This document shows positions 1 to 18,448 of a DNA stretch of 18,497 nt, piece by piece. The notes below the pieces were generated by a model. It searched no databases, was not told the DNA's origin, and saw nothing but the letters and a program-made list of their open reading frames with translations. A program made the translations under genes and the position numbers. How positions within the stretch are numbered: the stretch's first letter is position 1; the number at the start of each line of letters is the position of its first letter. Source of the DNA: Macrostomum lignano (lineage: Eukaryota); contig NIVC01005243.1 of assembly GCA_002269645.1 (NCBI GenBank), positions 1 through 18,497 of the forward strand. The letters run 5' to 3'.

Positions 1-790
1 GTTAAACGACTGTATTGTCTGTTTAGAGGCTGTATTGTCTGTTAAACGACTGATTGTCTGTTTAGAGGACTGTATTGTCTGTTAAACGACTGTATTGTCT
101 GTTTAGAGACTGCATTGTTGAAGAGTATTGTCTGTTTAGAGACTGCATTTCTGTTTAGAGACTGTATTGTCTGTTTAGAGACTGTATTGCCTGTTTAAGA
201 CTGTATTGTCTGTTTTAGAGGCTGTATTGTCTGTTAAACGACTGTATAGAGACTGTATTGCCTGTTTAGAGACTGTATGTCTGTTTAGAGGCTGTATTGT
301 CTGTTTAGAGGCTGTATTATCTGTTAAAACTGTATTGTCTGTTTAGAGACTGTATTGCCTGTTTAGAGACTGTATTGTCTGTTTAGAGGCTGTATTGTCT
401 GTTAAACGACTGTATTGTCTGTTTAGAGGCTGTATTGTCTGTTAAACGACTGTATTGTCTGTTTAGAGCTGATGTCTGTTAAACGACTGTATTGTCTGTT
501 TAGAGGCTGTATTGTCTGTTAAACGACTGTATTGTCTGTTAAACGACTGTATTGTCTGTTTAGAGACTGCATTGTCTGTTAAAGGCTGTATTGCCTGTTT
601 AGACATTGTATTGTCTGTTTAGAGACTATATTGTCTGCTTAAGGCTGTATTGTCTGTTTAGAGGCTGTATTGCCTGTTTAGAGGCTGTATTGTCTGTTTA
701 GAGGCTGTATTGTCTGTTTAGAGGCTGTATTGCCTGTTTAGAGGCTGTATTGCCTGTTTAGGGATTGCATCATTGTCTGTTAAAGGCCTG
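1..790. repeat. Minisatellite I, array 1 (20-bp unit GACTGTATTGTCTGTTTAGA, about 39 copies; runs off the window start)
   Basis: Direct tandem repetition with GAGGC/GAGAC/AAACGAC variants and many small indels in 50-290. Confidence 0.97.
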
Positions 791-837
791 TATTTATTCT
801 GTAATTTCTACTTTAAGTACTGTTACATTTATGTCCT

Positions 838-961
838 ATGAGTATAAGGAGGAACTTACGAAACATTCCTCGTAAATAGGATTTACTCAATGCACTCTCT
901 CAGGGCTATCAGTTCATTGAGACTCTACGCGACTTTGATTTCACTCTCAGCCATCAGACGC
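838..961. repeat. 124-bp duplicated element, copy 1 (downstream of the RPA-like gene)
   Basis: Aligns without gaps to 6044-6167 with 12 mismatches (about 90% identity, counted by hand). Confidence 0.95.
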
Positions 962-995
962 TCGGTCAAAAAAGTGGCGCGCCAACTGTGGCAAC

Positions 996-1130
996 TCACT
1001 GATACGAAGTGCTGTTCTGTACGCTGTGATCATCGAACGACATTCTGCTCGACTCATCCTGACCGTCGACACCTCCACTGCGGTGAAACTGACTCCGGTC
1101 ATCACCCGTCGACACTCGTCTGTATCGAAT
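996..1130 (-). CDS. Possible terminal exon of the RPA-like gene
   Basis: Strong acceptor TTTTTTTCTTCTCGCAG| at 1131. A phase-0 splice from the donor at 1382 gives IRYRRVSTG...STSYQ* (stop at 996). No recognisable domain; another frame is also open to 947. Confidence 0.4.
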   Translation of the reverse strand: MRYRRVSTGDDRSQFHRSGGVDGQDESSRMSFDDHSVQNSTSYQ

Positions 1131-1358
1131 CTGCGAGAAGAAAAAATTTATAAGGATATAAAATATGCGTAACAAGAAAGTCCTATTAAGCATGAATACA
1201 TAAAAGCAACACAATAAGTACTGTTCTCTTTGCTATTCAATTTGCGATTTTCAAAATAAATAGCTTAACTGAACACCTGTCTAACCTGGTAACCTAACAA
1301 ACTTTATTATATTTAATCTTAATACTAAAAGTGGTGCGTTGTTTGTCTGTATAATCAA

Positions 1359-2567
1359 CTAAATTTGTAGAAAATCACTCACCTTTTTGCCATTTCCGAA
1401 GTCCCTCACAATTTCCTTCGAGTGTTTGTCATAAAACTCAAACAAGGCAGCAGGCTCCCGAATTATGGTCACACTTTCGTCTCCAATCTCATCAGCACCA
1501 AGTCCTGGAGTAGGCACTGGAGCGGGCACAGGTTCAAACCGGGTATCGCCTTCCTTTGCATTCCTATACCAGTCAGCCAAGACTCTGGCTTCACCATCGT
1601 CACTGTTGCATTTTACGTCAGAGTTCGAGCATCCCAACGTGACGGAGCCCGAATACTCCTGCACCTTTGCTCTTCTTATGGACAAAACATCGCCGATGTT
1701 CCACCTGTCCACTTGAGCTGAGGACGAACCCCAAAACGTGCAGCTTACAGAGCCGAAGGTTCGGTCAACCAAAGTCACTTTGGCTACGTTAACCTTTTTC
1801 CCAGCACGCGTTCGGACTTCTTCAGACGGTTGCCTGGCGTCGATCACTCCAAGCACATCGACGATTCTGATAGTGAAAGGGAGCAAAGGGACTTTTTTTA
1901 ACTATTTGCACACTAACTTAAGCATCACATTAGATTTCTATTTGTACACTAACAGGAGCATCATGAAGCTAATAACCCAGGCTTCGTACAGTGTTGCGAT
2001 GATAAATATTTTCAAACACAAGACAAACTAACTGTCACCCAAAAACACGATTACATGTACTTTCACTCCGCGATATTTGAGCACTAATACATGACGAAAA
2101 CTACTAAATCAATTAGTCACTCACCTGTCCAATCCAGTCTGTTGCAGTTGATTAATGCTAGTGTAATCAATTACTGGATCTCGAGCAACCGGCACTTCGT
2201 TGCTTCTATAGATGAAGCCCTTGGAATCCACGGAAACGGTCATCTCAAGTGGATTGTCCGTACACTTGTACTCTGGCTTGGCAGTCTTCACCATCCCGCC
2301 GGATATGCGAACGGCTTCAGCATCGTTGCATACTTCCCAGATAGCTTGCAAATCCTTACCGAAGACGCTGACTCGCATCTCAGATGAGTCGTCCACCAAG
2401 ATGAACGAAAACACTTGGCCCTGACCTTTGTTGTTATTATACGTGTGAACGTCTTTCAGGTTCGTCACAAGGCCAGTGACAGGCGTAGGCATTTGCCCAA
2501 CTGTCAGACCGGCAATCCCATCCTTCTTCGACTTCTTTTTCAAAGGTGACTCTGAATAAGAGGCCAT
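1359..2567 (-). CDS. RPA70-like ssDNA-binding protein with two OB folds (DBD-A and DBD-B like); spliced, 3' end uncertain
   Basis: Exon 1 is 2567-2125 (MASYSESPLKKKSKK...VTNLKDVHTYNNNKGQGQVFSFILVDDSSEMRVSVF) and ends AG|GTGAGT. Intron 2124-1867. Exon 2 starts at 1866 in frame (R|IVDVLGVI...LVD...CTFWG...RAKVQEYSG...VLADWY). It ends either at the read-through stop at 1359 or at the AAG|GTGAGT donor (1382) spliced to a downstream exon such as 1130-996. Resemblance to RPA70 was judged from memory of the family. Confidence 0.87.
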
Positions 2568-2639
2568 TTTGCACAAAATATTATTCAACAATTGAAAAAA
2601 GAACTGATAAAAAGTATCAATCAAACTTTTTCTAAGCAA

Positions 2640-3390
2640 TGATAAGCTTTAACTGTAAGACAACAAAATTGGCTCAACAAATCACAAGCTATATATATGT
2701 AGAAATAAAAGTAGCCACGAAAAAAACACCACCTCCCCTCCAGCCCAGTACATTGTACTCAATTTTGCATTCATTTTTACTTTATTACACAATCTAATTG
2801 GCTGGACACACAACCCAACCCAATCACTCCAGTGCCCAGCATTAAAGCACACACTGCACCCTCTGATGTACGCTAAGGTCTCCTCACTTTTCTCACCTAA
2901 TCCTTTTGTTTGTTTGCTATCTCGTTTTATGGTGACACAATTCTCACCGACTGACTCAGCAAGTGTAGGCAATACTTTAAGAGTTCGCGGCCGCGTGTAC
3001 TTCACTGCACAAACAAAACTTGTATGGCGCGGCTGACTGGTTGAGCCATTTTCGCACCTTCTAAGCCGGGAAAGAAAAATAGGCGACCCTCCTCAAGTCA
3101 GGCTGCATGGCCACCAGTACGCTAGACAATTTTTAGGCCAATCGCCGCTCTAAAGCCCTGACCTGCACAACCGACCAATAGGAAGCCTCAGACTTGTACA
3201 GAAAACCACCGTAAGGCTCAGCGAAGCGACGACGCACAACCCATAACCCCTAATTTTATTCGCCCCTACACCTCAGTTTCAGTGCCTATATAGTCTGATA
3301 TAGTCTGATTCATATATTTAGAGTCATATATTTCTATATTAGAGTCTCAACAAATCATATTTTCTCAATCAAATCATCAACAAATCAACA
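2640..3390. promoter_or_regulatory. Putative bidirectional promoter between the RPA-like gene and the zinc-knuckle gene
   Basis: About 820 bp separate the divergent ATGs (2567 minus, 3391 plus). CCAAT motifs on both strands (about 2795, 3139, 3175) and TATA-like stretches (about 2690, 3286). The motifs are short and could occur by chance. Confidence 0.35.
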
Positions 3391-4003
3391 ATGCATATTA
3401 CACAAATATTTGGTGGCGGCGGCGGCGGTAGGCGAGGCGGCGGTCAGCGCGGCGGCTGGCAGCGCGGCAGGGGCGGCCCACGCGGAAAGAGCAGTGAGTA
3501 CCTTCCTAAGACACTGTAAATCTTGTGCTTTGAGTACATTCGAGTATAGTCTTAAATTTTATCTAATTGTAGCCTGTTACTGACTTTCATGCTACTCGTA
3601 TTATTACTGATAAATTTTGCAAAAATTTCCCTTCTTTTAATTGCCAGTCGTTTGTTTCTTCTGTGGAGGCCGCCACCGCGTTGCCAGCTGCAACGCGATG
3701 AAGGCCGCCGCCCGCCTTCTGCAGCAGCAACAGCAGCAGCAACAGCAGCAGCAGCAGCCGCAGCAGCAGCCGCAGCAACAGCAGCAGCCGCAGCAACAGC
3801 AGCAGCATCAGCAGCCGCAGCAACAGCAGCAGCATCAGCAGCCGCAGCAACAGCAGCAGCAGCAGCCGCAGCAACAGCAGCAGCATCAGCAGCCGCAGCA
3901 ACAGCAGCAGCATCAGCAGCCGCAGCAACAGCAGCAGCAGCAGCCGCAGCAGCAGCAACAGCAGCCGCAGCAACAGCAGCCGCAGCCAATGAATGAATTG
4001 TAA
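3391..4003 (+). CDS. Two-exon gene, 152 aa: Gly/Arg-rich (RGG-like) segment, CCHC zinc knuckle (CX2CX3HX4C), polyQ/P tail
   Basis: ATG at 3391 gives MHITQIFGGGGGGRRGGGQRGGWQRGRGGPRGKS. Donor A|GTGAGT at 3494, acceptor CTTCTTTTAATTGCCAG| at 3647. Phase 1 matches and gives ...GKSIVCFFCGGRHRVASCNAMKAAARLLQQQ...PMNEL*, stop TAA at 4001-4003. 103+356=459 nt. Confidence 0.72.
3722..3987 (+). repeat. CAG/CAA/CCG/CAT trinucleotide-derived repeat (polyQ with P/H; 27-bp QQPQQQQQH sub-unit)
   Basis: Directly visible; read as polyQ in the spliced frame. Confidence 0.95.
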
Positions 4004-4089
4004 ATTCCAAAATAAACTATGACTTTTTTGACTTTTGATTAAAATCCGCGATAGACTTATTTATTTTTTTGGACTTTTGAAACAATGGC

Positions 4090-4309
4090 GCACCAGTACA
4101 AAGTTTTGTGAACAGAATATTCTAATGCCATGAAATATTCAAAGTATAATTCATTCTCACCATAGCATGTCATGACAAAGAATGACCGTACATACACACT
4201 TACCATTTCATACTGGCTTACTTTGAAAGTAGAACAATACGAATCTGCATGAATAATTTCGCCGAACTATTAAACATTTCTAAGTTTTACGATTATTATA
4301 CACAGTACA
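4090..4309. repeat. About 220-bp dispersed repeat C, copy 1
   Basis: Shares TTTTGTGAACAGAATATTCT, TTCGCCGAACTATTAAACATTTCT and ACGATTATTATACACAGTACA, collinearly, with 18230-18448. Confidence 0.9.
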
Positions 4310-4914
4310 AAAAACTGTTTTATCCATTTTTAACTGCTATAACTAACAAAGAAGCAAACGGCGAATTAAATTTTAAACTATTAACAACCACAAATTGAAG
4401 TTTAAAAATTGAAACAAAAGTTAAACAAACACTTGTATTTATTCAAACAATATATGATCTGCTTCTGACTACTAACGCTGAGCAAGTTTAATATTTCGTA
4501 CAGATATTGAAAAATGTAATAATTAATTAACAAAAGGATAGACTGTCGCTTCAGCAGATGGTGCCATCGACAAGCAGCCAGTATAGCTTTAGCAGTACAA
4601 AAATGTACATGTATATGCCATCCTGACTACCTGCCGACTCGCGTCACTGCTCAATTGCATGCATTGGGTGTAAGCAAAGGTAGAGACATTCATTCTCAAA
4701 CCAAACATTAAGTCGCTCCGCTCTGCTTAAGGCTGCTACAGAGCTTGACTGCAAATGCTCCTTTTAGAGTCTGGAACCACAGGGTATATAGAGCAGCTCC
4801 TATACACCATTCACAAACTCTTTTAGCCCAGTTAAGATGCAGTCAACCTACTCTCAATGAGGGCTGCTTCATAAATTCCAATTATACATACATGTTTCAC
4901 CTGCTTATACCTGT

Positions 4915-6015
4915 ACTATTTCTGTTTACTGACTGTATTTTATGGTCTGTTCAGCGACTGTATTAGTGACTGCATTATTGTCTGTTTAGAGGCTGTATTG
5001 TCTGTTAAACGACTGTATTGTCTGTTAAACGACTGTATTGTCTGTTTAGAGGCTGTATTGTCTGTTAAACGACTGTATTGTCTGTTTAGAGGCTGTATTG
5101 TCTGTTAAACGACTGTATTGTCTGTTTAGAGACTGCATTGTCTGTTTAGAGACTGTATTGTCTGTTTAGAGACTGCATTGTCTGTTTAGAGACTGTATTG
5201 TCTGTTTAGAGACTGTATTGCCTGTTTAGAGACTGTATTGTCTGTTTAGAGGCTGTATTGTCTGTTTAGAGACTGTATTGCCTGTTTAGAGACTGTATTG
5301 TCTGTTTAGAGGCTGTATTGTCTGTTTAGAGGCTGTATTGTCTGTTTAGAGGCTGTATTGTCTGTTTAGAGGCCGTATTGTCTGTTTAGAGGCTGTATTG
5401 TCTGTTTAGAGGCTGTATTGTCTGTTTAGAGACTGTATTGCCTGTTTAGAGGCTGTATTGTCTGTTTAGAGACTGTATTGCCTGTTTAGAGACTGTATTG
5501 CCTGTTTAGAGACTGCATTGTCTGTTTAGAGGCTGTATTGCCTATTTAGAGACTGTATTGTCTGCTTAGAGGCCGTATTGTCTGTTTAGAGACTGTATTG
5601 TCTGTTTAGATACCGTATTGTCTGTCTAGTGACTGTATTGTCTGTTTAGGGACTGTATTGTCCGTTTAGAGACCGTATTGTCTGTAGAGACTGTATTGCC
5701 TGTTTAGAGGCTGTATTGCCTGCTTAGAGGCTGTATTGTCTGTTTAGAGACTGTATTGTCTGTTTAGAGACTGTATTGTCTGTTTAGAGACTGTATTGCC
5801 TGTTTAAAGGCTGTATTGTCTGTTTAGAGGCTGTATTGTCTGTTAAGAGGCTCTATTGTCTGTTTAGAGGCTGTATTGTCTGTTTAGAGGCTGTATTATT
5901 GTCTGTTTAGAGACTGTCTGCATAGTGACTGTATTATTGTCTGTTTATACCTGTACTACTATCTGTTTAGTGACTGTATGATCAGTGGCTGTAGTTTTGT
6001 CTGTTAAATGACTGT
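4915..6015. repeat. Minisatellite I, array 2 (same 20-bp unit, about 50 copies with degenerate edges)
   Basis: Same consensus as array 1, highly regular over 4975-5900. Confidence 0.97.
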
Positions 6016-6043
6016 ATATCATGTTCGTGTAAAACTGTTATAG

Positions 6044-6167
6044 ATGAGTATAAGAAAGAACTTATGAAACATCCCTCGTAAATAGGATTTACTCAATGTA
6101 CTCTCTCAGGGCTATCAGTTCATTGAGACTTCACGCGACTTTGATTTCATTCTCTACAGTCAGACGC
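6044..6167. repeat. 124-bp duplicated element, copy 2 (downstream of the RepHel stop)
   Basis: Aligns to 838-961; lies about 60 bp past the RepHel stop codon. Confidence 0.95.
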
Positions 6168-6225
6168 CAGACACTTCTCAAACACATCTCTTGGACTTGA
6201 ACTCACGAATAGCGTCCGAAAATGC

Positions 6226-6990
6226 TTAGTCTCCAGTCAGCACCTCTGGGTACACCACGTTCCTCGTCTTAGTTCCAGAAGTACGGACACGGACATTAGC
6301 AGCGTTCCTCGCTCGCGACAGAGCCGTATACAGCTGGCCATGAGTGAAGCAACCGACAGCGAGGTCCACGCCAACTGTGTCCAGAGACTGTCCCTGCGAC
6401 TTGTGGATCGTCAGGCAGAAGCTCGGCTTCACAGGGAACTGCAGCCGCTTGAAACTGACGGGGAGGTCCGCATTGCTTGGAATCAGCGGGATTCGCGGCA
6501 GAAGAATCTCGTCTCCCGTGAACTGGCCGGCGGCAATCTTGCATCTAAGCACGTTCTCGCCCATCGCGAGTATGATGAGCCGCGTACCATTGCACAATCG
6601 TGGCGGGTTGATGTTCCTGAGAAGAACTACTGGCATACCCTCCTTTAGCCTCAGCAAGTGAATCGGAAAGTTCGGGGCATCCAGCTGGTTGAGCAACTCA
6701 GGCGGGAAGTGCGTAGCGGCATCCTCATCGGCCACAGTGTCTATCGAGCGGTACTCCCGCAGGCTTCCGGGGAACATGCCCAGACACGTCTCATTGATGG
6801 CATCCACTGAGTCATTGTAAGGCGCCAGGATCGCTCGGCTTGCAAAGTAGCTGTCTCTCTCCACTGGTTCTTCAAACGATGGGTACACAAAATTGATTAG
6901 ATCAGTGAGAGGCCCTTCCGCAGAAATCACGATCTCGGCTGGCAGAGACACTTTCTCCTCCGCATCCTGCTTCATTGTTCCGGATCCGAT
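6226..6990 (-). CDS. RepHel exon 9: PIF1 helicase C-terminal motifs
   Basis: RAILAPYND, LRLKEGMPVVLLRNINPPRLCNGTRL, RIPLIP, RLQFPVKPSFCLTIHKSQGQSL, FTHGQLYTALSRA, TRNVVYPEVL. Acceptor CCACAG|ATC at 6991 and stop TAA at 6228-6226. Confidence 0.93.
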   Translation of the reverse strand: MGSGTMKQDAEEKVSLPAEIVISAEGPLTDLINFVYPSFEEPVERDSYFASRAILAPYNDSVDAINETCLGMFPGSLREYRSIDTVADEDAATHFPPELLNQLDAPNFPIHLLRLKEGMPVVLLRNINPPRLCNGTRLIILAMGENVLRCKIAAGQFTGDEILLPRIPLIPSNADLPVSFKRLQFPVKPSFCLTIHKSQGQSLDTVGVDLAVGCFTHGQLYTALSRARNAANVRVRTSGTKTRNVVYPEVLTGD

Positions 6991-9900
6991 CTGTGGAGGG
7001 TTAAAATGTCGAATATTTCATAACCTATACACACTTTTAAGCATAGACATTCCTAAATGACGCAAACTTAAAAAAATTGAGCTCAAAAACAAATCCGCGT
7101 CTAGTGTATCATTGTCAATCATTTAATAAACTGATGAAATCAGACTTACCTGCTTGAGTAGCTCGGTGTACATCTGATACGCTACAGAATCGGAACTGCT
7201 CAGCATCCGGATGTTTCTCGTCAGGCGATGCCGTTGGAAGTATTTCCACAGTGAGGATCGGCTAACACACGCCATGACACTGTTAGCACGAGTCCCATGC
7301 ACCACAACGGGTAGGAGCTGCCGGAAGTCACCAGCGCACACAAACACCAGTCCGCCAAATGGCGAGTCCTGCTTCCGCACATCTCGCAAGCACCGGTCGA
7401 CCGCCTCCAAATCCTTCCGGTTTGTCATAGAAATCTCGTCCCACACAATTAGACGCGCTGTGCGAAATACAGCAGCTTGTTTGGACTGCACTCCAACAGC
7501 GCACACGTCCTTGTTTGAGCGTAATACCCGAATTGGTATCTTGAACCTGACATGGAAAAATTTGGGTATCATACAGCAGAGGAAGTATTCACATATTTAC
7601 TTGTTTAATTATTCGTAAGTTACTAATAATTTACAAATTAAATATAAACAACTCACGTGGAATGCGCAGTTTGTCCACCTGGCAACAGAGTCGCTGCGAT
7701 TCCTGAAGCCGCAACGGCGAGAGCGACTTCACCCCGGCTGCGCACGAAGGCCAGCAAAACCTCCAGCAGGAAAGTCTTGCCAGTACCAGCGGGCGCGTCC
7801 AGGAAGTGCAAGCCGCCGTTGCCGCTCACAAGATCCTGAGTCACTGACTCGTACACGTCTTTCTGCTCGTCTGTCAGCATTGGTAAGCGTGCCTCAGTAA
7901 TCTGCGCTTGCTCAATCGTATCGAACTGCATCGGTCCATCTTGAGGCATCACGGAGGCCGCAGGCAAGCCGTACTCTGGCAGGCTTCTCCCACCCATGGA
8001 GGTCAGCATGCTCTGCAGCTCGCGGAGCGCTAGGTCAGTAATCTCCTCGGCACTTAAATCTCGATGGTGGAACCGCAGGTCCTCGCACATATCTTCGGCA
8101 AAAGAGCACCAAAGGTCGTTGCCATCCTCAGGCTCGCCCCATATGAGAATGACAGCCAGAATGTGTCTCAGGGCTCTTGGCATTCTTGACTGAACGGCCT
8201 CAGCTAGGCACCGCCGCCAGTGGTCATCTCGCTGCAGCAGACCAAGTGCCATGCAAGCAGCCTTGGCGCTCGGATGCACAACGCCGTCCACGGTCTGCAG
8301 CGCCTCGAAGCTGGTTGGTCCCTTGACTCGCAAAAGAAGCATGCGAACATAAAATAAATCACCAGTTCTTGGGCTCACCGTGTACATGCGTGCAACGTTT
8401 GTGTTCCGCACTACACCCGGGTGGCCATCGACTTTCGCGCCTCGCTTGGCCCGCCGCCACACTCTTTCACTGGCATGCCACACGAAGTAGGACGGCACCT
8501 CCGTGTAGAGCAAGGACCGAGCAAACTCGTCAGTACGGCACAGCTTGAAAAATGCTGTCAACGTAGAGTCCCTCGGCGTCCTGGCTCTAGCACTTGCGGT
8601 CTGCTCGTTGAAATACACGAGCTGCTCCTCCGACTTGTGAACGCAGAGCCGGATGACCGCCGGAAATCTGTCATGCACCTGATCAGAAGGTGGGAGAGAA
8701 ATAATCGCTTTTAAGTTTTTTCTGAATACAAAAAGCCACAGTTTTGCAATATTTACTCTTAAAATTTAAAATATTTATTACTTCAAAGCCCAAAATTGTA
8801 TTCACAGCTTCCATTGGGCCAATGTAGCGCGCAGACAGATACTCCTTGATTTCATCACGCGGCCTCTCTCCATCGTTTGCCGCTACCGTTTGCGTCGGCT
8901 GCTGACTACCCGCACTCTGTTCTGTCGCTTCAGCAGAATTCTGATTGGCATTGACTTTGAACGTTGCCATGTCGCCGCCCTTCAGCAAGTACTTGATCAC
9001 GTACTTGACCGACTTTACAGTGGCACAAACTTCAACGTTCATGTGGCACGCAAACTGGAGCAACAGTTCAGGGCTATAAGGCACAACCCACCTGTGGTTT
9101 AAGGAAAAAAACATTGTCAAACGTTTCCAACATAAAATACAAGAGGCACCTAATACTCATGACTCGCCTGTTGTCCATGCGAATGCTGCGGCCTTTGAAC
9201 AGTTTGTCCACTGTAAATCCACCCATCTCAGGCGACAGTCTGCGGTACAGTGGGTAGCCAGTATCGCTGGTCAGCGTCACCTGCTGGAACTCCTTCGGAA
9301 AGCCCTTGCTGCATTCGCCATTCTCCATGCACGGGCACGCTGGATTGTCCTTGCCACAAGGGCCATGGATCATGTGCGTTTTCACCAGCTCATACAGCAC
9401 AGGCTGCTGCTGTGGGTCCGGAATCTCGGCAGACACGATGTCATCGTATCGGTCCGGAGTCACCCGCTGGCCACTCGCTAGCCACAGCAGAAAGTGCACA
9501 TGGGGGAGACCTAAATTATCAAGAAAAGTATCAAGACATCTTTCAGTCCAATTATCCGATCTGTATCGAATTTGCATCACACAAACCCACCTGTATTTAG
9601 TATCTTTATAACGATATAACTATATAAATTTCATAAAACATAATACTGAGACTTGTACTCACCACGCTTTTGGTACTCTAGCGAGCAGACGTGCGCAGCC
9701 TCTTTCCCATAGCGCTTCGTTAGCTGGGCCAGCAGAGCTTTCTTCTTCATTTCAAAGACTCGGCTAACAATGTCCGGTCGGTGTTCAGCCCGCTGTCCAG
9801 GCAGCAGCTGGGCGCTGATCTCCGGCCAATTCGGATTGCATGTTGCCGTGACAAACAGGTCCGGCTTACCAAACTTGTGAACATAGGTCATAGCGTCCTG

Positions 9901-12900
9901 CAGCCTCTCCATCAGGTACCTTGGCCCGCCAACGAAGCTTGAGGACAGAAGCACATGTGCGGGCTTGCCTATGTCACTCGGATCTCTGTCCGTAGATCTG
10001 CCATCAGCTGCAAACAGAGCGTCCCGCAGACCGCTGTACGTCTCGCTGCGCAGGTCCTGCTGATGGGTCCGCAAATACAGCAGCCTCTCTGCCTCAATCT
10101 TTGCACACATGTCCACCAGGTACTGCTGAAACAACCTTCGGCCATAGTGCAGCACACTGAACTGGCCCGCTCGCACCATGATTTCGCTTGCATAGTATTT
10201 CATGGGGGTCAGTTTCTTGTCATTACTCATCCGCAACTCCGGGTGCCAGCCATCTTCGCCATTCGGGAACAGCAGCACATACTCCAGCGGGTCATATGAG
10301 CGGTGCGTCTCACTGATTCGCTGAGAACCGCCCCACGCAGTTGAATCACGACGTCCCGACTGGCCGGTGCGTCCTCATTGTCCTCAACGATCAGGATACC
10401 GACCTCATTTGCCGTAGGCAAGTTGTAGCGCCTGATTTTAAACGGAGTTTGTGGGACACAAATTCTGTACAAATTGAATCACGTACTTATTACGCATTTT
10501 TGCGAGTTCGAGTTACAATCAAAATTCATAATCTCATTTTGATTTCGCTTTCGTTTACATTTTTAAATTTCGTTATAACAAACACGCTAACTTACCGAAT
10601 GTGTTCCCCAGATGGTCGACGGTCAGGGTGAATCACAATTCGCGCATCTCCCAGCTCTGGGTCTTGGCTAATTCGCTCAGCAGCAGCCTTCAGGCTGCGG
10701 ACATAGCCGTTGCACTCGTGAAGCAGCGTCTGCAGCAGCTCCAGTAGTTCCGGCTTCACCTTTTGGCTGAGACTCTGGCGGCTTTCGAGTTCGCGATCAT
10801 TGAAATACACCTGCCATCCCTGAGCTTCAGCAGAATCCTCTGCAAACAGCGGCGCCGTGCGGTGATGCATCTGGCCGCTGATGATGAAGCTAGGACACCA
10901 GCCTGGCACCAACCGCAGTTTGGCACCCAGCGATGTCAGGTGCAGCGCCGAGTTGTAGCTCCTGATGTTGGCCAGGAACGCGGCACTCAATCTGTGCCGC
11001 CCCATGTACAGATCCGCCAGCACTTGAGGCACGGTGCGGCTGGGCAGCTTCACCTTGCCTTTGGCGCAGCAGAAATTCCTGGTCTCTGCGCGCCAGAGTA
11101 GAGCACCACATTCCTGGCATGCCCTGTCCATTGGGCCGCACTCATGGGCCGTGGCCTCTGGCCTCGGTATTCTGTCAGGCCTGTGATCGAATTATATGCG
11201 TGCACAAATGGTAACTATAATATAGACTGCCGATATTTATGAAATGTAAAGTGTATTATGTAGTGCAATATAAAAAATTACTGTGACCAGTAGCACAAAA
11301 AAGCCTACCTATTTTGAGCAGATCCTGCATCAGAATGACCTGCACCAAAATGACCTGACCCAGAAAGATCTGCCCCCTGCTCCGTTAAACTCGGCGCCTC
11401 TGTATCTGCAACGGGCTCGGAAACTGGCAGTGGATCAGTCACGCGCAACGACTCATAGTGCTCATGACGTAAAAGGATGCGCACAATTGCAGTGGGTGGC
11501 TGCACAGTGGACATGCAGTACTGCAATACACTGCCATTTGCCTGATAAATAACCAGGTCAACATTGAAAAAACGGCTTAAAAGTGGCACGACTTCATCAG
11601 GAACATAGGTGCCCTCAGAAAAAGAGTCGTTAATAATGGAATCAGCATTTTCCGGTAAAATAAAACCTTCGTCAATCAGTTCTGGCATTACCTGCACTGC
11701 ACGGCATGTCAGTTCATGCCTTAAAGACGCTGCATTGGTCTCAAGCGGAGTGCCCTGCAACTGGTCACATACTGCATGAAAAAAGCAATTTCCATCACCC
11801 GGGATCCGAACAACAGTTAGCGTATTGAATGGGACCACAGCTCGTGTGGCCAACTCACCGCTGCCAAACCTGAAAGATTGAAATTATACTTCTGACTCTG
11901 AAAAACTCATTAACAGTTAAGACATAAAAACTTTGACTCATTCTTAAAAATACATATTCTTAGAAACTCATTATCTTCAGTACAAATTCTTAAAATATGA
12001 TTCACAAATACTGTTTCTTAGAAACTAATTCTCGAAAATACAGATTCTTAGACAGTCATTCTTACAAATTAAGATTCTTAGAAAAGTTTGTTGCAAATGT
12101 AGATTCTTATAAACATTCCTAAAAATACGGGTACTTAGAAACTTAATAGTCACAACTACAGATTCCTAGAAATAGAGTACAGAATTCTTAGAAACAGAAA
12201 CCCTTTCTTACAAATACAGACTGTTAGAAACATTCCTAGAGTAACAGATTCTTAAAAACGTTTCTTAAAAATACACATTCCTACAAATACAGATTCTTAG
12301 AAAACACTTTCTTAAAAATACAGATTCTTAGAAATGTTTTTTTAAATGCAGATTCCTAGAAACTCTTTTTATCCAATTCTGATTCCTAGAAACGTTTCTT
12401 AAAAATACACCCTCTTTTAAAAACTCATATCTCTATAATAATTCAATAATTTTTCAAATTAAATTAAAATGGTCCTCTCACCTGTCAACTGAAACTCCTC
12501 GACGGCGAATTTGGTCGGCTTCCATTCGAGCTCTTCGCTGAGCCTCAGTTTCTGTGGCCCTGCGCTCAATTGTGCGCCGCCGATCTGCAGCCAGGCGCTC
12601 TTCGCGCAGAGCGTCGGTCTCCCTGGCCCTACGCTCAGTCTCCTGCTGCCGGAGTGCAGCCAGGCGCTCTTCGCGCTGAGTGTCGGTCTCCCTGGCCCTA
12701 CGCTCAGTCTCCTGCTGCCGGAGTGCAGCCAGGCGCTCTTCGCGCTGAGTGTCGGTCTCCCTGGCCCTACGCTCAGTCTCCTGCTGCCGGAGTGCAGCCA
12801 GGCGCTCTTCGCGCTGAGTGTCGGTCTCCCTGGCCCTACGCTCAGTCTCCTGCTGCCGGAGTGCAGCCAGGCGCTCTTCGCGCTGAGTGTCGGTCTCCCT

Positions 12901-13236
12901 GGCCCTAAGCTCAGTCTCCTGCTGCCGGAGTGCAGCCAAGCGCTCTTCGCGCTGAGTGTCGGTCTCCCTGGCCCTACGCTCAGTCTCCTGCTGCCGGAGT
13001 GCAGCCAGGCGCTCTTCGCGCTGAGTGTCGGTCTCCCTGGCCCTACGCTCAGTCTCCTGCTGCCGGAGTGCAGCCAGGCGCTCTTCGCGCTGAGTGTCGG
13101 TCTCCCTGGCCCTACGCTCAGTCTCCTGCTGCCGGAGTGCAGCCAGGCGCTCTTCTCGTTGAACAGCGGTCTCTTGCTGACGCTTCTTCTTGGCGTCTCT
13201 GCTCTTTTTTAAAGCGCTGGTGCCACGTCGAGCCAT
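6226..13236 (-). CDS. Helitron RepHel transposase (STPR repeats - OTU - Zn finger - HUH Rep - PIF1 helicase), 9 exons, about 1835 aa; one 1-nt frameshift (possible pseudogene or sequencing error)
   Basis: Exons (minus): 13236-12482, 11869-11309, 11180-10596, 10431-9663, 9510-9168, 9091-8782, 8678-7657, 7546-7150, 6990-6226. They sum to 5507 nt, or 5508 (1836 codons) with one G restored at 10331-10334. All junction phases match, and splicing rebuilds conserved motifs across junctions: EYQKRG|LPHVH, MDNR|WVVPY, ILGFE|VHDRFP, AHST|FKIP, LLKQ|IGSG. Confidence 0.93.
7150..7546 (-). CDS. RepHel exon 8: PIF1 helicase motifs II-IV
   Basis: LIVWDEISM (Walker B), PFGGLVFVCAGDFRQLLPV, LTRNIR. Acceptor GTCAG|G at 7547 and donor CAG|GTAAGT at 7149. 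Confidence 0.93.
7657..8678 (-). CDS. RepHel exon 7: Rep-helicase linker and PIF1 helicase motifs I/Ia
   Basis: STLTAFF, YTEVPSYFVW, ARMYTVSP, FYVRMLL, GPTSFEAL; Walker A FLDAPAGTGKTFL; AASGIAATLLPGGQTAHS. Donor AC|GTGAGT at 7656. Confidence 0.93.
8782..9091 (-). CDS. RepHel exon 6: Rep motif 3 (two catalytic tyrosines)
   Basis: WVVPYSP...HMNVEVC...SVKYVIKYLLKG (YxxKYxxK), DEIKEYLSARYIGPMEA. Acceptor CCACAG|G at 9092 and donor GAA|GTAATA at 8781. Confidence 0.9.
9168..9510 (-). CDS. RepHel exon 5: HUH motif 2 and Cys/His cluster
   Basis: (G)LPHVHFLLW, VKTHMIHGPCG...CPCMENGECSKGFPK, GYPLYRR. Acceptor TTTAG|G at 9511 and GC-type donor AG|GCGAGT at 9167. Confidence 0.88.
9663..10431 (-). CDS. 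RepHel exon 4: Helitron-like N domain and Rep motif 1; contains the frameshift
   Basis: RYNLPTANEV, then a frameshift, then SYDPLEYVLLFPNGEDGW, RLFQQYLVD, SSSFVGGPRY, FGKPDLFVTATCNPNWPEI (motif 1), EYQKRG. Donor G|GTGAGT at 9662. Confidence 0.9.
10596..11180 (-). CDS. RepHel exon 3: Zn-finger-like region (CxxC...CC) and conserved Helitron N-terminal region
   Basis: CQECGALLW...NFCCAKGKVKLP, FLANIRSYNSALHLTSLG, IISGQMHHR, HPDRRPSGEHIR. Acceptor ACAG|G at 11181 and donor CG|GTAAG at 10595. Confidence 0.9.
11309..11869 (-). CDS. RepHel exon 2: OTU-family cysteine protease (deubiquitinase-like) domain
   Basis: VVRIPGDGNCFFHAV (Asp/Cys box) and ILLRHEHYES (His box). Acceptor TTTCAG|G at 11870 and donor AG|GTAGGC at 11308. 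561 nt, phase 2-2. Confidence 0.9.
11890..12420. repeat. Degenerate approximately 29-30-bp tandem repeat filling RepHel intron 1
   Basis: About 16 copies of a CTTAAAAATACAGATTCTTAGAAAC-like unit. Confidence 0.85.
12482..13236 (-). CDS. RepHel exon 1: basic N-terminus plus ten 23-aa STPR-like repeats
   Basis: ATG at 13236 (MARRGTSALKK...). Repeat unit ETDTQREERLAALRQQETERRAR. Ends at AG|GTGAGAG donor, phase 2. Confidence 0.85.
12484..13173 (-). repeat. 69-bp coding tandem repeat (STPR-like), 10 units, the central 7 nearly identical
   Basis: Among the central units I saw only two differences, at about 12908 (R->L) and 12939 (synonymous). Confidence 0.97.
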
Positions 13237-13399
13237 TTTAGAGTTTCGATTTGAAATAGGAATTAAATTGAAGTTAGGAGTCAGAATGAAAATTAAGGAA
13301 TAAAATAGGAAAGAGTTGAAAAATAATATAGGAATGGGAAAGAAAAGTAAAGATAGCGCGAGAGGTTGTGTGAATATAGACAAAGATAAGAAGACTACC

Positions 13400-13570
13400 A
13401 ATACCTTTTAACTCAGCGCACCACCCACCCCAAAAGCTGTACATTGTTCAGTGTTCATATATACTCCAGCACCCGCTGCTAATTGGCCAAGCCCATTAAA
13501 GCTAAAGTTATTTCTACAAAACTGCTAATAAATTGGTCAAAGTCAAGAATCGTTTAACCAATGCGATGTA
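13400..13570 (-). promoter_or_regulatory. Putative RepHel promoter
   Basis: Two minus-strand CCAAT motifs (+ ATTGG near 13482 and 13533) and a TATATA-like stretch near 13457, upstream of the ATG at 13236. Positional inference only. Confidence 0.25.
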
Positions 13571-13792
13571 CAAGCATTGAAAAGTCGCCACTCTATGCGC
13601 CAGTGACTATTCTGAAATGAAAGTTAGGAGAAAACTGAGGGGTATCTTTAATCCGTCCAACCCTCAAACACCACCCCCCCCCCACTTCATTCTACCCAAG
13701 TCTGCCGCGTGGCGTATGCTGTTGCGTCACTCGCAAAATTGAGAAACCTTACCTGCACTCTCAAAAGTGGCGATCACAGACGGAAATTTCAG

Positions 13793-13962
13793 CTCTAGGC
13801 TAGCTCTCATCGAAGTTATAATGAATTTCTAGCACTTATATTCAACACTCACACCGAGTCATGTAGAGTAAAAGTCACACGAAGCAGTTGACATAATCAA
13901 TTTCTTAGGCAAGTCAGTACCAGTGTCTATAAAAGTTAACAATATGGTTACGCAATATAAAT
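13793..13962. repeat. About 165-bp dispersed repeat B, copy 1
   Basis: Shares CTCTAGGCTAGCTCTCATCG, CACACGAAGCAGTT and AGTTAACAATATGGTTACGCAAT with 17334-17494. Confidence 0.92.
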
Positions 13963-13970
13963 TGACTCTT

Positions 13971-14826
13971 ATATGATTTTTTTCATGACGCTTCTATGAT
14001 TTTTACATGACGCTTCTATGATTTTTTACATGACGCTTCTATGATTTTTACATGACGCTTCTATGATTTTTTAAATGAAGCTTCCATGATTTTTTAGATG
14101 ACGCTTCTATGATTTTTTAGATGACGCTTCTATGATTTTTTAGATGACGCTTCTATGATTTTTTAAATGAAGCTTCCATGATTTTTTAGATGACGCTTCT
14201 ATGATTTTTTAGATGACGCTTCTATGATTTTTTAGATGACGCTTCTATGATTTTTTAAATGAAGCTTCCATGATTTTTTAGATGACGCTTCTATGATTTT
14301 TTAGATGACGCTTCTATGATTTTTTAGATGACGCTTCTATGATTTTTTAGATGACGCTTCTATGATTTTTACATGACGCTTCTATGATTTTTACATGACG
14401 CTTCTATGATTGTTTACATGACGCTTCTATGATTTTTTTAAATGACGCTTCCATGATTTTAAAATGACTCTTCTACGATTTTTCACATGACGCTTCTATG
14501 ATTGTTTACATGACGCTTCTATGATTTTTTGCATGACGCTTCTACGATTTTTACATGACGCTCCTATGACTTTTTTAAATGACGCTTCTATGATTTTTAT
14601 ATGACGCTTCTACGATTTTTATATGACGCTTCTATGATTGTTGAAATGACGCATCTATGATTTTTATATGACGCTTCTATGATTGTTTACATGACGCTTC
14701 TATGATTGTTAACATGACGCTTCTATGATTTTTTACATGACGCTTTTATGATTTTTACATGACGCTTCTATGATTGTTTACATGACGCTTCTATGATTGT
14801 TTACATGACGCTTCTTTGATTGTCAT
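13971..14826. repeat. Minisatellite II, array 1 (22-23-bp unit ATGACGCTTCTATGATTTTT(T)AC, about 38 copies)
   Basis: Direct tandem repetition; an ATGAAGCTTCC variant recurs at 14075, 14167 and 14259 (92-bp higher-order period). Confidence 0.97.
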
Positions 14827-14846: not shown

Positions 14847-15900
14847 GTACTTTGATTGGGGAGCCAAATAAATGCAATACACGTTTTTTTAATAAGCTAC
14901 ATGTATCCTTGAAATCTTAAAAAATCTCCTGTCAAACCTTGTAAGCCTTGACATGTCAGTTATTCCCCCCCCCACAAGCTTTGACATATCAACTTCCCCC
15001 CTTGACATCTCAGCAATGCCCCCAATAAGCCTTGGAAATCTAAAAATATCTGTCAACCTTCTAACCCTAGCCTAACCCTAACCCTAACCTAACATTGAAA
15101 TTTCAGTAATTCTCTCTAAGAGTCACTATAGCACTACTACAGCATTATAGCGATTTCCTGCAAGCCTCGACATCGTAGGGATTCCCAAATGAATCTCTTA
15201 ACTTCGACATGAAGCTTCTTTTATTTTTTACATTACGCTTTTTTTATCAGCGATCCCTCCCCTGAGGAGGCATCAAATAATGTAATAAAAAGTTTTCAAT
15301 AAACTACATGTAGCTTCTGACTTTAGCCTTGAAATCTCATTTATACCCCGTGAGCCTTGACATCTCAGCTATTCCCCCCGTAAGCCTTAACATGTCAGCG
15401 ATGGCCTCCATAAACCTTGAAATCTAAAAAATCCCCTGTTATTCTGTTAACCTTGAAACCCGATAAAATATAACCCTCAACCCACACCTGACCTAAACCT
15501 AACTTTAACCCAACCTAAAGCCTTGAAATCTCAGCAATTCTTCTCCCCTAAGCCTTGACATTTTAGTGATTCCTTCTTTAAGAATCACAGCACTATAACG
15601 ATTTCCACCAAGCTTTGACATCGTAGCAATTCCCAAATGAATCTTTTAACTTGAACATGACTTTTCTTTTATGTATAGCTCGTACATACGCTCGTAGTGC
15701 TACTTTTATTTTTTACATGACTCTTCTTCTATAAGCGCCTCCCGTGGCGAGCCAACAAAGAATGCAATAAAAAAATTGAGTAAAGTACATGAACTTTGAA
15801 GTAGCTTCTGACTTTTGCTTTGACATCTCAAAACCCCCCCCCCCGTAATCTCAGCAGTTATTCTCTGAGAGCCTTTACGTCTCAGTTTTTCTCCCCAGCA
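14847..15900. repeat. Two and a half degenerate tandem copies of a 400-480-bp unit (AAGCCTTGACAT sub-repeats, CCCTAA-like tracts), homologous to 17870-18200
   Basis: Units start near 14847, 15256 and 15735 with shared ...AATGCAATA...AATAA.CTACATGTA. 14847-14938 closely matches 17879-17965. The segment CGACATCGTAG..ATTCCCAAATGAATCT..TAACTT is shared at about 15168-15210 and 15617-15660. Confidence 0.85.
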
Positions 15901-15929: not shown

Positions 15930-17226
15930 TTTTATGATTTTCTATGATTTTTAAATGACGCTTCTACGATTTTTACATGACGCTTCTATGATTTTTTACA
16001 TGACGCTTCTATGATTTTTTACATGACGCTTCTATGATTGTTTACATGACGCTTCTATGATTTTTTAAATGACGCTTCTATGATTGTTTACATGACGCTT
16101 CTATGATTGTTTACATGACGCTTCTATGATTTTTTACATGACGCTTCTATGATTGTTTACATGACGCTTCTATGATTGTTTACATGACGCTTCTATGATT
16201 GTTTACATGACGCTTCTATGATTCTTTACGTGACGCTTTTATGATTTTCACATGACGCTTTATGATTTTTTAAATGACGCATCTATGATTTTTATATGAC
16301 GCTTCTATGATTTTTTTAAATGACGCTTCTATGATTGTTTACATGATGCTTCTATGATTTTTTAAATGACGCATCTATGATTTTTTTACATGACGCTTCT
16401 ATGATTCTTTACATGACGCTTCTATGATTGTTTACATGACGCTACTATGATTTTTTTACATGATGCTTCTATGATTGTTTACATGACGCTTCTATGATTG
16501 TTTACATGACGCTTCTATGATTTTTTCATGACGCTTCTGTGATTGTTTACATGACGCTTCTATGATTGTTTACATGATGCTTTTATGATTGCTTACATGA
16601 CGCTTCTATGATTGTTTACATGACGCTTCTATGATTGTTTACATGACGCTTCTATGATTGCTTACATGACGCTTCTATGATTGTTTACATGACTCTTCTA
16701 TGATTTTTTACATGACGCTTCTATGGTTTTTACATGACGCTTCTATGATTTTTACATGACGCTTCTATGATTTTTTATATGACGCTTCTATGATTTTTTT
16801 AAATGATGCATCTATGATTTTTATATGACGCTTCTATGATTTTTTACATGACGCTTCTATGATTGTTTACATGACGCTTCCATGATTTTTTAAATGACGC
16901 ATCTATGATTTTTATATGACGCTTCTATGATTTTTTTAAATGACGCTTCTATGATTGTTTACATGATGCTTCTATGATTTTTTAAATGACGCATCTATGA
17001 TTTTTATATGATGCTTCTATGATTGTTTACATGACGCTCCTATGATTTTTTACATGATTCTTTTATGATCGTTTACATGACGCTTCTATGATTTTTAAAT
17101 GATGCTTCTATGATTTTTAAATGACGCTTCTACGATTTTTTACATGACGCTTCTATGATTGTTTACATGACGCTCCTATGATTTTTTACATGACGCTTCT
17201 ATGATTCATTACATGACGCTTCTTTT
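15930..17226. repeat. Minisatellite II, array 2 (about 57 copies)
   Basis: Same unit as array 1; internal identical block at 16262-16385 and 16882-17005. Confidence 0.97.
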
Positions 17227-17333
17227 TAAAAAGTCTTTTAGTTTTCCTGACGTTGAAAAGCTTTAATTAAAAAAATTATACTCTATGAAAATTCGAACCA
17301 TCGTCGCTGCATTTAGCAGTTCAGTCTGTTCAC

Positions 17334-17494
17334 CTCTAGGCTAGCTCTCATCGTTTTGATAACATCAAATTTTGCACTTATATAATTCAACAGTTTAAAA
17401 TCCAAGCATAGAGTAAATCACACGAAGCAGTTATGACATAATCAGTTTCTCAGTCAGTCAGTATCAGTTAACAATATGGTTACGCAATTTAAAT
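17334..17494. repeat. About 165-bp dispersed repeat B, copy 2
   Basis: Direct-orientation diverged copy of 13793-13962. Confidence 0.92.
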
Positions 17495-17857: not shown

Positions 17858-17886
17858 CTAGCAATCTACGCCCCCCGTTGGGGAGC
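17858..17886 (-). other. Helitron 3' terminus (GC-rich hairpin + CTAG) of an adjacent upstream element
   Basis: Minus strand GCTCCCC-AAC-GGGGGGC (7-bp stem, 1 mismatch), 8-nt spacer, CTAG, then T. This is the canonical Helitron 3' signature. Confidence 0.8.
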
Positions 17887-18229
17887 CAAATAAATGCAAT
17901 ACACGTTTTTTAATAAGCAACATGTAGCTAAGCCTTGAAATCTTAAAAAATCTCCTGTCAAACTTCTAACCATAACCCCAACCCTAACATAACCCTAAAT
18001 TGAATATTTTGTTCACGAGTTTTTGCATGATGCTTGCATTATTTTTTGCATGACGCTTCCATAAATATTTTTAATAGGCTACTACATGAGCTAAGTTATA
18101 AGCTACCCTAACCCTAGCCCTAAGCCAAATCTTAACGCTATACCCTGAACCTAACACTAAACCTTGAAACCCTAACACCAATCCTAACACTAACCCTACA
18201 GCCTGACATTTTCATAAGTTTGTGAAGCG

Positions 18230-18448
18230 CTTATGCACCAAATTTTTGTGAACAGAATATTCTCAGTGAAATGAAATATTTGAAGCTTTATTTATTCCCG
18301 GCATAGCACATCACTACAAAGAACGTGCATATACGCGTACCATTTAATACTGGCATACTTTAAGCGTAGGATGATACGAAACTGCGTGAATAAATTCGCC
18401 GAACTATTAAACATTTCTGTTAGTTTCACGATTATTATACACAGTACA
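18230..18448. repeat. About 220-bp dispersed repeat C, copy 2
   Basis: Direct-orientation diverged copy of 4090-4309 (offset about 14,140). Confidence 0.9.

Follow-up and report, generated by a model that had tools for sequence, protein, structure and literature searches.

The analysed stretch, hereafter called the window, comprises 18,497 nucleotides of a Macrostomum lignano contig (NIVC01005243.1). Two Helitron-type genes, RepHel and an RPA-like gene, are encoded on its minus strand, and each is followed by a 3' segment and an array of a 20-bp satellite designated as satellite I. The unit on which this study focuses is located within the 2.3-kb spacer between these two modules, on the strand opposite to RepHel and RPA. 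The context described in an earlier note on this DNA, namely RepHel and an RPA-like OB-fold gene on the minus strand together with 20-bp satellite arrays, was present in all its parts. The genome of M. lignano is more than half repetitive, with LTR retrotransposons accounting for 21% and simple and tandem repeats for 15% (PMC5730564). The features of the two modules are summarized below.

8 to 761, no strand assigned: satellite I, 20-bp unit, after the RPA module (detected by TRF; cut by the window start)
762 to 962, minus strand: 3' segment after RPA, starting 34 nt past the RPA stop and running into satellite I
996 to 2567, minus strand: RPA-like gene, three exons, two OB folds (Pfam REPA_OB_2 and OB-fold), TGA stop
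4917 to 6005, no strand assigned: satellite I, 20-bp unit, after the RepHel module, with degenerate units at 4917 to 4975 (TRF and self-BLAST)
6006 to 6168, minus strand: 3' segment after RepHel, starting 58 nt past the RepHel stop and running into satellite I
6226 to 13239, minus strand: RepHel gene, multi-exon, with STPR repeats, OTU, Helitron_like_N, PIF1 and Pif1_2B/UvrD_C (Pfam)

Genes and repeats of the Helitron modules

RepHel contains the Rep and helicase parts in one gene, as judged from the Pfam matches to Helitron_like_N (E = 4e-46) and to the PIF1-type helicase (E = 2e-35). The product of its last exon showed 94% amino acid identity to BOX15_Mlig024103g1 of M. lignano. The exons of the RPA-like gene were 53–59% identical to the M. 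lignano RPA-like proteins P0001 to P0004, with the same starting Met. The STPR-OTU-RepHel-RPA architecture has already been described for HLE1-clade (canonical) Helitrons (PMC11417382), and the HLE1 accessory layout, with STPRs and OTU upstream and RPA downstream, was found in the window. Literature searches returned no description of Helitrons in Macrostomum, nor any account of Helitrons that carry a knuckle protein as cargo.

The N-terminal part of RepHel (12586–13162, in the minus-strand ORF 12478–13401) is encoded by a 69-bp tandem repeat of 8.4 copies with 98% matches, which translates to 23-residue STPR repeats (PF21107, E = 7e-27). The STPR-coding repeat of L001, a paralogous RepHel copy of M. 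lignano, has only ~4 copies at 87%. Thus, the number of DNA-binding repeats varies between RepHel copies. AT-rich ~30-bp tandem repeats (28% GC) at 11936–12409, between the STPR and OTU coding parts, are presumably intronic.

Two arrays of a 23-bp satellite (13963–14821 and 15940–17223) are located beside the 5' side of the Helitron. Their flanking segments are repeated in a different arrangement, as 13788–13962 resembles 17329–17494 and 14856–14937 resembles 17878–17963. These arrays and their flanks may represent another repeat-carrying element family. Degenerate telomere-like tracts (CCCTAA/CCTAA variants) were observed internally at 15061–15093 and ~17960–18200, each coming after one copy of the repeated segment 14856–14937 / 17878–17963. 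Self-BLAST also detected a dispersed ~210-bp repeat at 4099–4309, just after the AATAAA of the spliced unit described below. Its second copy (18239–18448, 81% identity, same orientation) comes after the degenerate telomere-like repeats, near the window end. Neither the Rfam scan nor the tRNA scan of the window gave a match.

The predicted spliced unit and its paralogue

The earlier note had proposed that a GTGAGT donor at 3494 and a CAG acceptor at 3647 join a Gly/Arg-rich exon in frame to a Cys/His knuckle, and these coordinates proved to be exact. The features of the unit are as follows.

3138 to 3292, plus strand: putative promoter-like stretch, with CCAAT at 3138–3142 and 3175–3179 and TATATA at 3287–3292, ~100 nt before the ATG (read from sequence)
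3391 to 3393, plus strand: ATG of the spliced unit, with A at −3 and a stop in frame 17 codons upstream (read from sequence)
3391 to 3493 (103 nt), plus strand: exon 1, encoding MHITQIF and then a Gly/Arg-rich tri-RGG stretch, and ending one base into codon 35
3494 to 3647 (154 nt), plus strand: predicted intron, AT-rich, with the GTGAGT donor at 3494–3499, a TACTGAT branch-like site, a pyrimidine tract and the CAG acceptor at 3645–3647
3648 to 4003 (356 nt), plus strand: exon 2, encoding the knuckle, a short Ala-rich linker and a Gln/Pro/His tail, with the TAA stop at 4001–4003
3653 to 3691, plus strand: knuckle CFFCGGRHRVASC, C-x2-C-x3-H-x4-C, single, 35 residues from the N-terminus
3721 to 3986, plus strand: CAG/CAA/CCG minisatellite (units of 27 and 78 nt) encoding the Q/P/H tail (TRF period 27, 9.7 copies, 88% matches)
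4011 to 4016, plus strand: AATAAA, 8 nt past the stop, in surrounding DNA of 29% GC where it may occur by chance

The two exons together comprise 459 nt (103 + 356), which corresponds to 152 codons plus the stop. The predicted 152-residue product consists of MHITQIFGGGGGGRRGGGQRGGWQRGRGGPRGKS and IVCFFCGGRHRVASCNAMKAAARLL, which meet at the exon junction, followed by the Q/P/H tail. The frame of exon 1 reaches a stop after 42 codons if it is read without splicing. The knuckle frame opens just 7 nt ahead of the acceptor, and since a TAA at 3638–3640 closes it upstream, the acceptor sits exactly where it is required. The intron of the neighbouring RPA-like gene carries the same signals, a GTGAGT donor and a CAG acceptor preceded by a pyrimidine tract. 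The RPA-like gene and the unit are arranged head-to-head, with 823 bp from ATG to ATG. A common promoter of the unit, RPA and RepHel was considered and rejected, as the local alignment scores of their upstream regions were not above those of shuffles. Only weak AT-rich matches were obtained when terminal inverted or direct repeats were sought around the unit.

When the window was translated in all six frames, a single C-x2-C-x3/4-H-x4-C motif was found, compared with 0.037 occurrences expected from composition-preserving shuffles. This instance, CFFCGGRHRVASC, confirmed the CX2CX3HX4C motif that had been claimed. Its X3 spacing is non-canonical and differs from the C-x2-C-x4-H-x4-C spacing of zf-CCHC (PF00098), and the Pfam profile of this family did not match the knuckle even at E ≤ 10. 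Because the X3 knuckles of P0126 go undetected by this profile as well, the missing match is weak evidence against the knuckle. P0126 is a Retrotrans_gag (Pfam) protein with four C-x2-C-x3-H-x4-C knuckles and was the second-best HMMER match. Its segment CFQCGGKHKVRDC aligned with CFFCGGRHRVASC without gaps and with identical spacing (phmmer E = 2.9e-6 among 1.84 billion proteins). A single-sequence AF2 model of the knuckle gave a beta-hairpin plus a helix with a pLDDT of 80.7. A Foldseek search with this model returned nothing significant, the best PDB match being a C2H2 finger (E = 5.7), and a PDB sequence search returned no match to the unit. The motif is a plausible X3-type knuckle that we do not class as a PF00098 member.

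RGG occurs at residues 15–17, 20–22 and 27–29 of the product, together with two more RG. An RGG/RG box of the tri-RGG type consists of three RGG that are 0–4 residues apart, and the arrangement in the product agrees with this pattern; the definition of the motif reportedly goes back to Thandapani et al. 2013. At the DNA level, the RG part corresponds to a GGC-type tandem repeat with a 15-nt unit (3412–3477). The minisatellite that encodes the tail shows 92% identity between copies at the 78-nt offset, and it can be read through in every frame of either strand, giving low-complexity ORFs in the other frames and on the other strand. This minisatellite has expanded recently, and the Q-rich tail may be neutral. 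The Gly/Arg and Q/P regions announced in the earlier note are present, but both are encoded by tandem repeats, and the non-repetitive part comprises only ~50 codons.

Only these 50 codons are common to P0128 (UniRef A0A1I8JBM3), an M. lignano protein that was the best relative in the full HMMER scan with the 32-residue exon-2 peptide against 1.84 billion representatives. The first 50 residues of P0128 are MHITQIFGGGRRRGGSGRRGGWQRGSGPRGKS and IVCFFCGGRHRVASCN, separated by the exon junction, and they agree with the window product in the starting Met, in the position of the junction and in every residue of the knuckle. The N-terminus is 80% identical to the exon 1 product; the RG stretch differs by in-frame indels and substitutions, and P0128 keeps two RGG plus several RG. 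All four Cys/His ligands are identical between the two copies (n = 2 only). The homology ends right after ...SCN, where P0128 runs on into an RVT_1 fragment of the LINE type (positions 142–192, with the FADD motif) instead of polyQ. The database names A0A1I8JBM3 'Reverse transcriptase domain-containing protein', though its first 50 residues correspond to the RGG/knuckle unit. P0128 is probably a chimeric gene model spanning a truncated LINE insertion.

The shared Met, junction and knuckle indicate that the spliced frame is no accident of this locus. Judged from these two sequences, there are two or more copies of the unit, and their contexts differ; P0128 is the only paralogue known, and it is known as a protein sequence only. 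A hidden spliced gene at this position is upheld by canonical signals, a low chance expectation and a second M. lignano copy with the same junction and an identical Cys/His motif.

These data also bear on the possibility that low-complexity GGC and CAG repeats are joined here by splice-like sites and form no gene at all. The frame is indeed mostly repeat-encoded and open in several frames, and it has no Pfam or PDB matches. However, a Cys/His motif expected 0.037 times per window, an acceptor located 7 nt after the opening of the frame, and an independent gene model with the same Met, junction and knuckle largely refute such a chance ORF, which we regard as very improbable.

Relatives outside M. 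lignano were sought in several collections. When the spliced N-terminus (62 residues) was used as the query of a word-indexed search, no relative was found among 5.8 billion proteins. Among the 1.84 billion representatives, HMMER found no relative of the exon-2 peptide except P0128 and the Gag-like knuckle protein P0126. A scan of JGI metagenome contigs gave 599 pattern matches, of which 0 were confirmed, and exact look-ups of 20 window-encoded sequences, including the spliced product, retrieved no identical entry. Look-ups for genomic contigs encoding window ORFs, P0001 or P0128 likewise returned none. Because relatives are lacking in both protein collections and in the JGI metagenome contigs, the family is considered to be lineage-restricted.

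Position of the unit relative to the Helitron

The earlier note had regarded the unit as apparently internal to the Helitron and as possibly a third element-encoded protein. We compared the window with other RepHel loci, namely L001, L002–L007 and L008, which represent three lineages only and none of which has the 3' architecture of the window. The nucleotide identity of RepHel was 80–92% to L001, extending from 6226 to ~13264, and 70–78% to L002–L008. The RepHel of L001 is interrupted by a ~4.3 kb insertion (L001 5737–10059) that consists mainly of 58-, 103- and 114-bp tandem repeats. The RepHel exons of L002, a Logan contig, were 59–87% identical at the protein level. Compared with the L002 ORFs, the window copy of RepHel showed one frameshift and no in-frame stops in the aligned segments, and one extra insertion of ~110 nt that is compatible with an intron.

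The similarity of RepHel copies stops at the stop codon in every comparison, and the downstream DNA differs in all four lineages. RepHel is followed by the 3' segment and satellite I in the window, by 23-, 18- and 16-bp satellites in L001 (10805–20804), by an RPA gene in L002 (5345–7249), and by a ~50-bp tandem repeat in L008 (1529–1704). From these sequences, satellites seem to be exchanged or seeded on the 3' side of this Helitron lineage. The 10 kb downstream of RepHel in L001 contained no trace of the unit, satellite I or RPA, and the unit was absent from both 10-kb flanks of L001 as well as from the RepHel contigs of L002–L007 and L008. In L002, the one relative that carries RPA, the RPA-like ORFs directly follow RepHel in the same orientation; they start ~400 bp past its stop, and the interval contains nothing else.

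The two 3' segments of the window share 80% identity over 186 aligned columns, with an ungapped core of 838–962 versus 6044–6168 (length ~125–200 nt), and the satellite I arrays at 8–761 and 4917–6005 are 81–86% identical. The RPA-side and RepHel-side modules of 3' segment and satellite are only ~80–85% identical. Segment and satellite together resemble a 3' UTR/satellite module common to both genes, which arose by duplication or recombination, and the window looks like two separate 3' ends, not like one element with an internal gene. Helitron ends (5'-TC ... hairpin ... CTRR-3', between A and T) were not located in the window, which is cut inside the left satellite array. No end composed of a hairpin, CTRR and T was found in 2600–4980, and no terminal sequence was common to the window and L001 or L002. 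Everything from RepHel to the second satellite array may therefore still belong to a single composite element.

A GC-rich hairpin was observed at 3663–3711, inside the knuckle-coding sequence. It has an 8-bp perfect stem with a GCGTTGCC/GGCAACGC-type core and a DNA dG of −17.9 kcal/mol (z = −2.9; 0/200 shuffles were equally stable), and the homology to P0128 stops inside its 3' arm. This hairpin was rejected as a Helitron 3' end because no CTRR + T was present at the right distance on either strand.

Known cargo provides a further standard. A survey of 404 genomes listed 20 domains that are stably carried by Helitron-like elements (RPA, OTU, EN, STPRs and 16 others); its main text does not contain the word 'zinc' and names no knuckle domain among the carried domains (PMC11417382). 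Stable cargo is defined there by its presence in most copies of a family at a conserved position (PMC11417382), and in the few comparators used here (three lineages) the unit did not show this distribution.

A protein that combines RGG with a knuckle is a plausible binder of single-stranded DNA or RNA. The unit could accordingly be conceived as a third protein stably carried by the Helitron, transcribed divergently from RPA and acting as an ssDNA/RNA chaperone or scaffold for the element. It is located between RepHel and RPA, each of which has a copy of the 3' segment and satellite downstream, and no element terminus separating the two genes was found. Helitrons are known to capture genes, including those for nucleic-acid-binding domains (PMC11417382), and Helentrons carry histone genes and hypothetical proteins (PMC4067079). 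However, the unit is missing from every related RepHel locus examined, RPA abuts RepHel in L002, and the window shows two apparent 3' ends. The unit also runs in the direction opposite to RepHel and RPA and has promoter-like and poly(A) signals of its own, its paralogue P0128 adjoins a LINE-type RT fragment in another context, and the adjacent RepHel copy carries a frameshift. In addition, no homologue was found in any other Helitron-bearing genome by the searches of 5.8 billion and 1.84 billion proteins. The claim that the unit is internal to the Helitron is thus left unsupported, and stable carriage by the element is improbable.

We also considered that a Macrostomum Helitron lineage acquired an intron-containing RGG/knuckle gene, head-to-head with RPA, in a composite element with a duplicated 3' segment and satellite. 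This is a speculative proposal to which we attach even less weight. If it were true, the element would have two single-strand nucleic-acid-binding accessories, a type not yet listed for Helitron-like elements. True Helitron cargo of this kind would extend the few accessory functions recognized in rolling-circle transposons by a knuckle/RGG protein, and it would point to the involvement of a chaperone while their DNA is single-stranded.

Interpretation and comparison with known systems

The explanation we prefer, with about an even chance of being correct, is that the unit belongs to a small gene family restricted to Macrostomum, or represents a 5' fragment of such a gene, and is located between two Helitron-derived modules. 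One module would be RepHel with its 3' segment and satellite I, the other RPA with its 3' segment and satellite I, and the unit between them would not be one of the genes conserved in this Helitron lineage. It may be host sequence that became enclosed by two insertions, or sequence captured during the formation of a composite element. If expressed, the unit would give a 152-residue protein whose only ordered part is predicted to be the single Cys2-His-Cys X3 knuckle after the tri-RGG box, a knuckle type seen in some retrotransposon Gag proteins. The most plausible ligand of such a product would be RNA or single-stranded nucleic acid. The gene reading extends to the 50 codons common to the paralogue, the rest being repeat-encoded, and the window copy could be a non-functional fragment.

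In the case of a non-functional fragment, only the promoter, exon 1, the intron and the initial 16 codons of exon 2 would be derived from a genuine gene or a retroelement Gag knuckle; the CAG minisatellite would keep the frame open by chance in the window, and a truncated LINE would adjoin the fragment in the paralogue. We consider this history a serious alternative, though less likely than the preferred one. It agrees with the end of the P0128 homology right after ...SCN and with the stable hairpin at this break, with a tail whose 27/78-nt minisatellite can be read through in every frame, with the abundance of satellites in the region and in this Helitron lineage, and with the match of the knuckle type to Gag-like knuckles. 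However, the stop is followed by AATAAA 8 nt on, P0128 is itself evidently a disrupted copy carrying an RT fragment, and no longer parent protein with this knuckle was found among the 1.84 billion representatives. RT or Gag remnants were sought near the unit, and none was found within the window.

Taken together, the evidence favours a small gene or gene fragment that is restricted to this lineage and is located where a highly repetitive flatworm genome is rich in satellites and Helitron sequences. The finding is of value for annotation, as ORF-based scans miss the unit and at least one paralogue has probably been mis-modelled as a reverse-transcriptase protein. The locus also illustrates the free remodelling of DNA downstream of RepHel in this Helitron lineage.

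Like the genes captured by Helitron-like elements, the unit is found among Helitron genes and satellites and would encode a nucleic-acid-binding module, as do many captured domains; it differs from stably carried ones in its occurrence among the few comparators, where it is not seen in most copies at a conserved position. It differs from the Gag-like protein P0126 in having no Gag domain, a single knuckle, an intron and no retroelement nearby. Its tri-RGG arrangement followed by a Q-rich tract resembles that of RGG/RG-box proteins with Q-rich low-complexity tails (FUS/EWS-type), whereas the unit is far smaller, is without an RRM or other folded RNA-binding domain, and has two low-complexity parts that are both young tandem repeats at the DNA level. 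Compared with the knuckles of retroviral and retrotransposon nucleocapsids and of CNBP-type proteins (PF00098), the unit has x3 in place of x4 and one knuckle only, outside a Gag or CNBP repeat context. It shares with them the ligand order Cys, Cys, His, Cys, the aromatic residues between the first two Cys, the Gly after the second Cys, the basic residues around the knuckle, and a basic Gly/Arg-rich neighbourhood.
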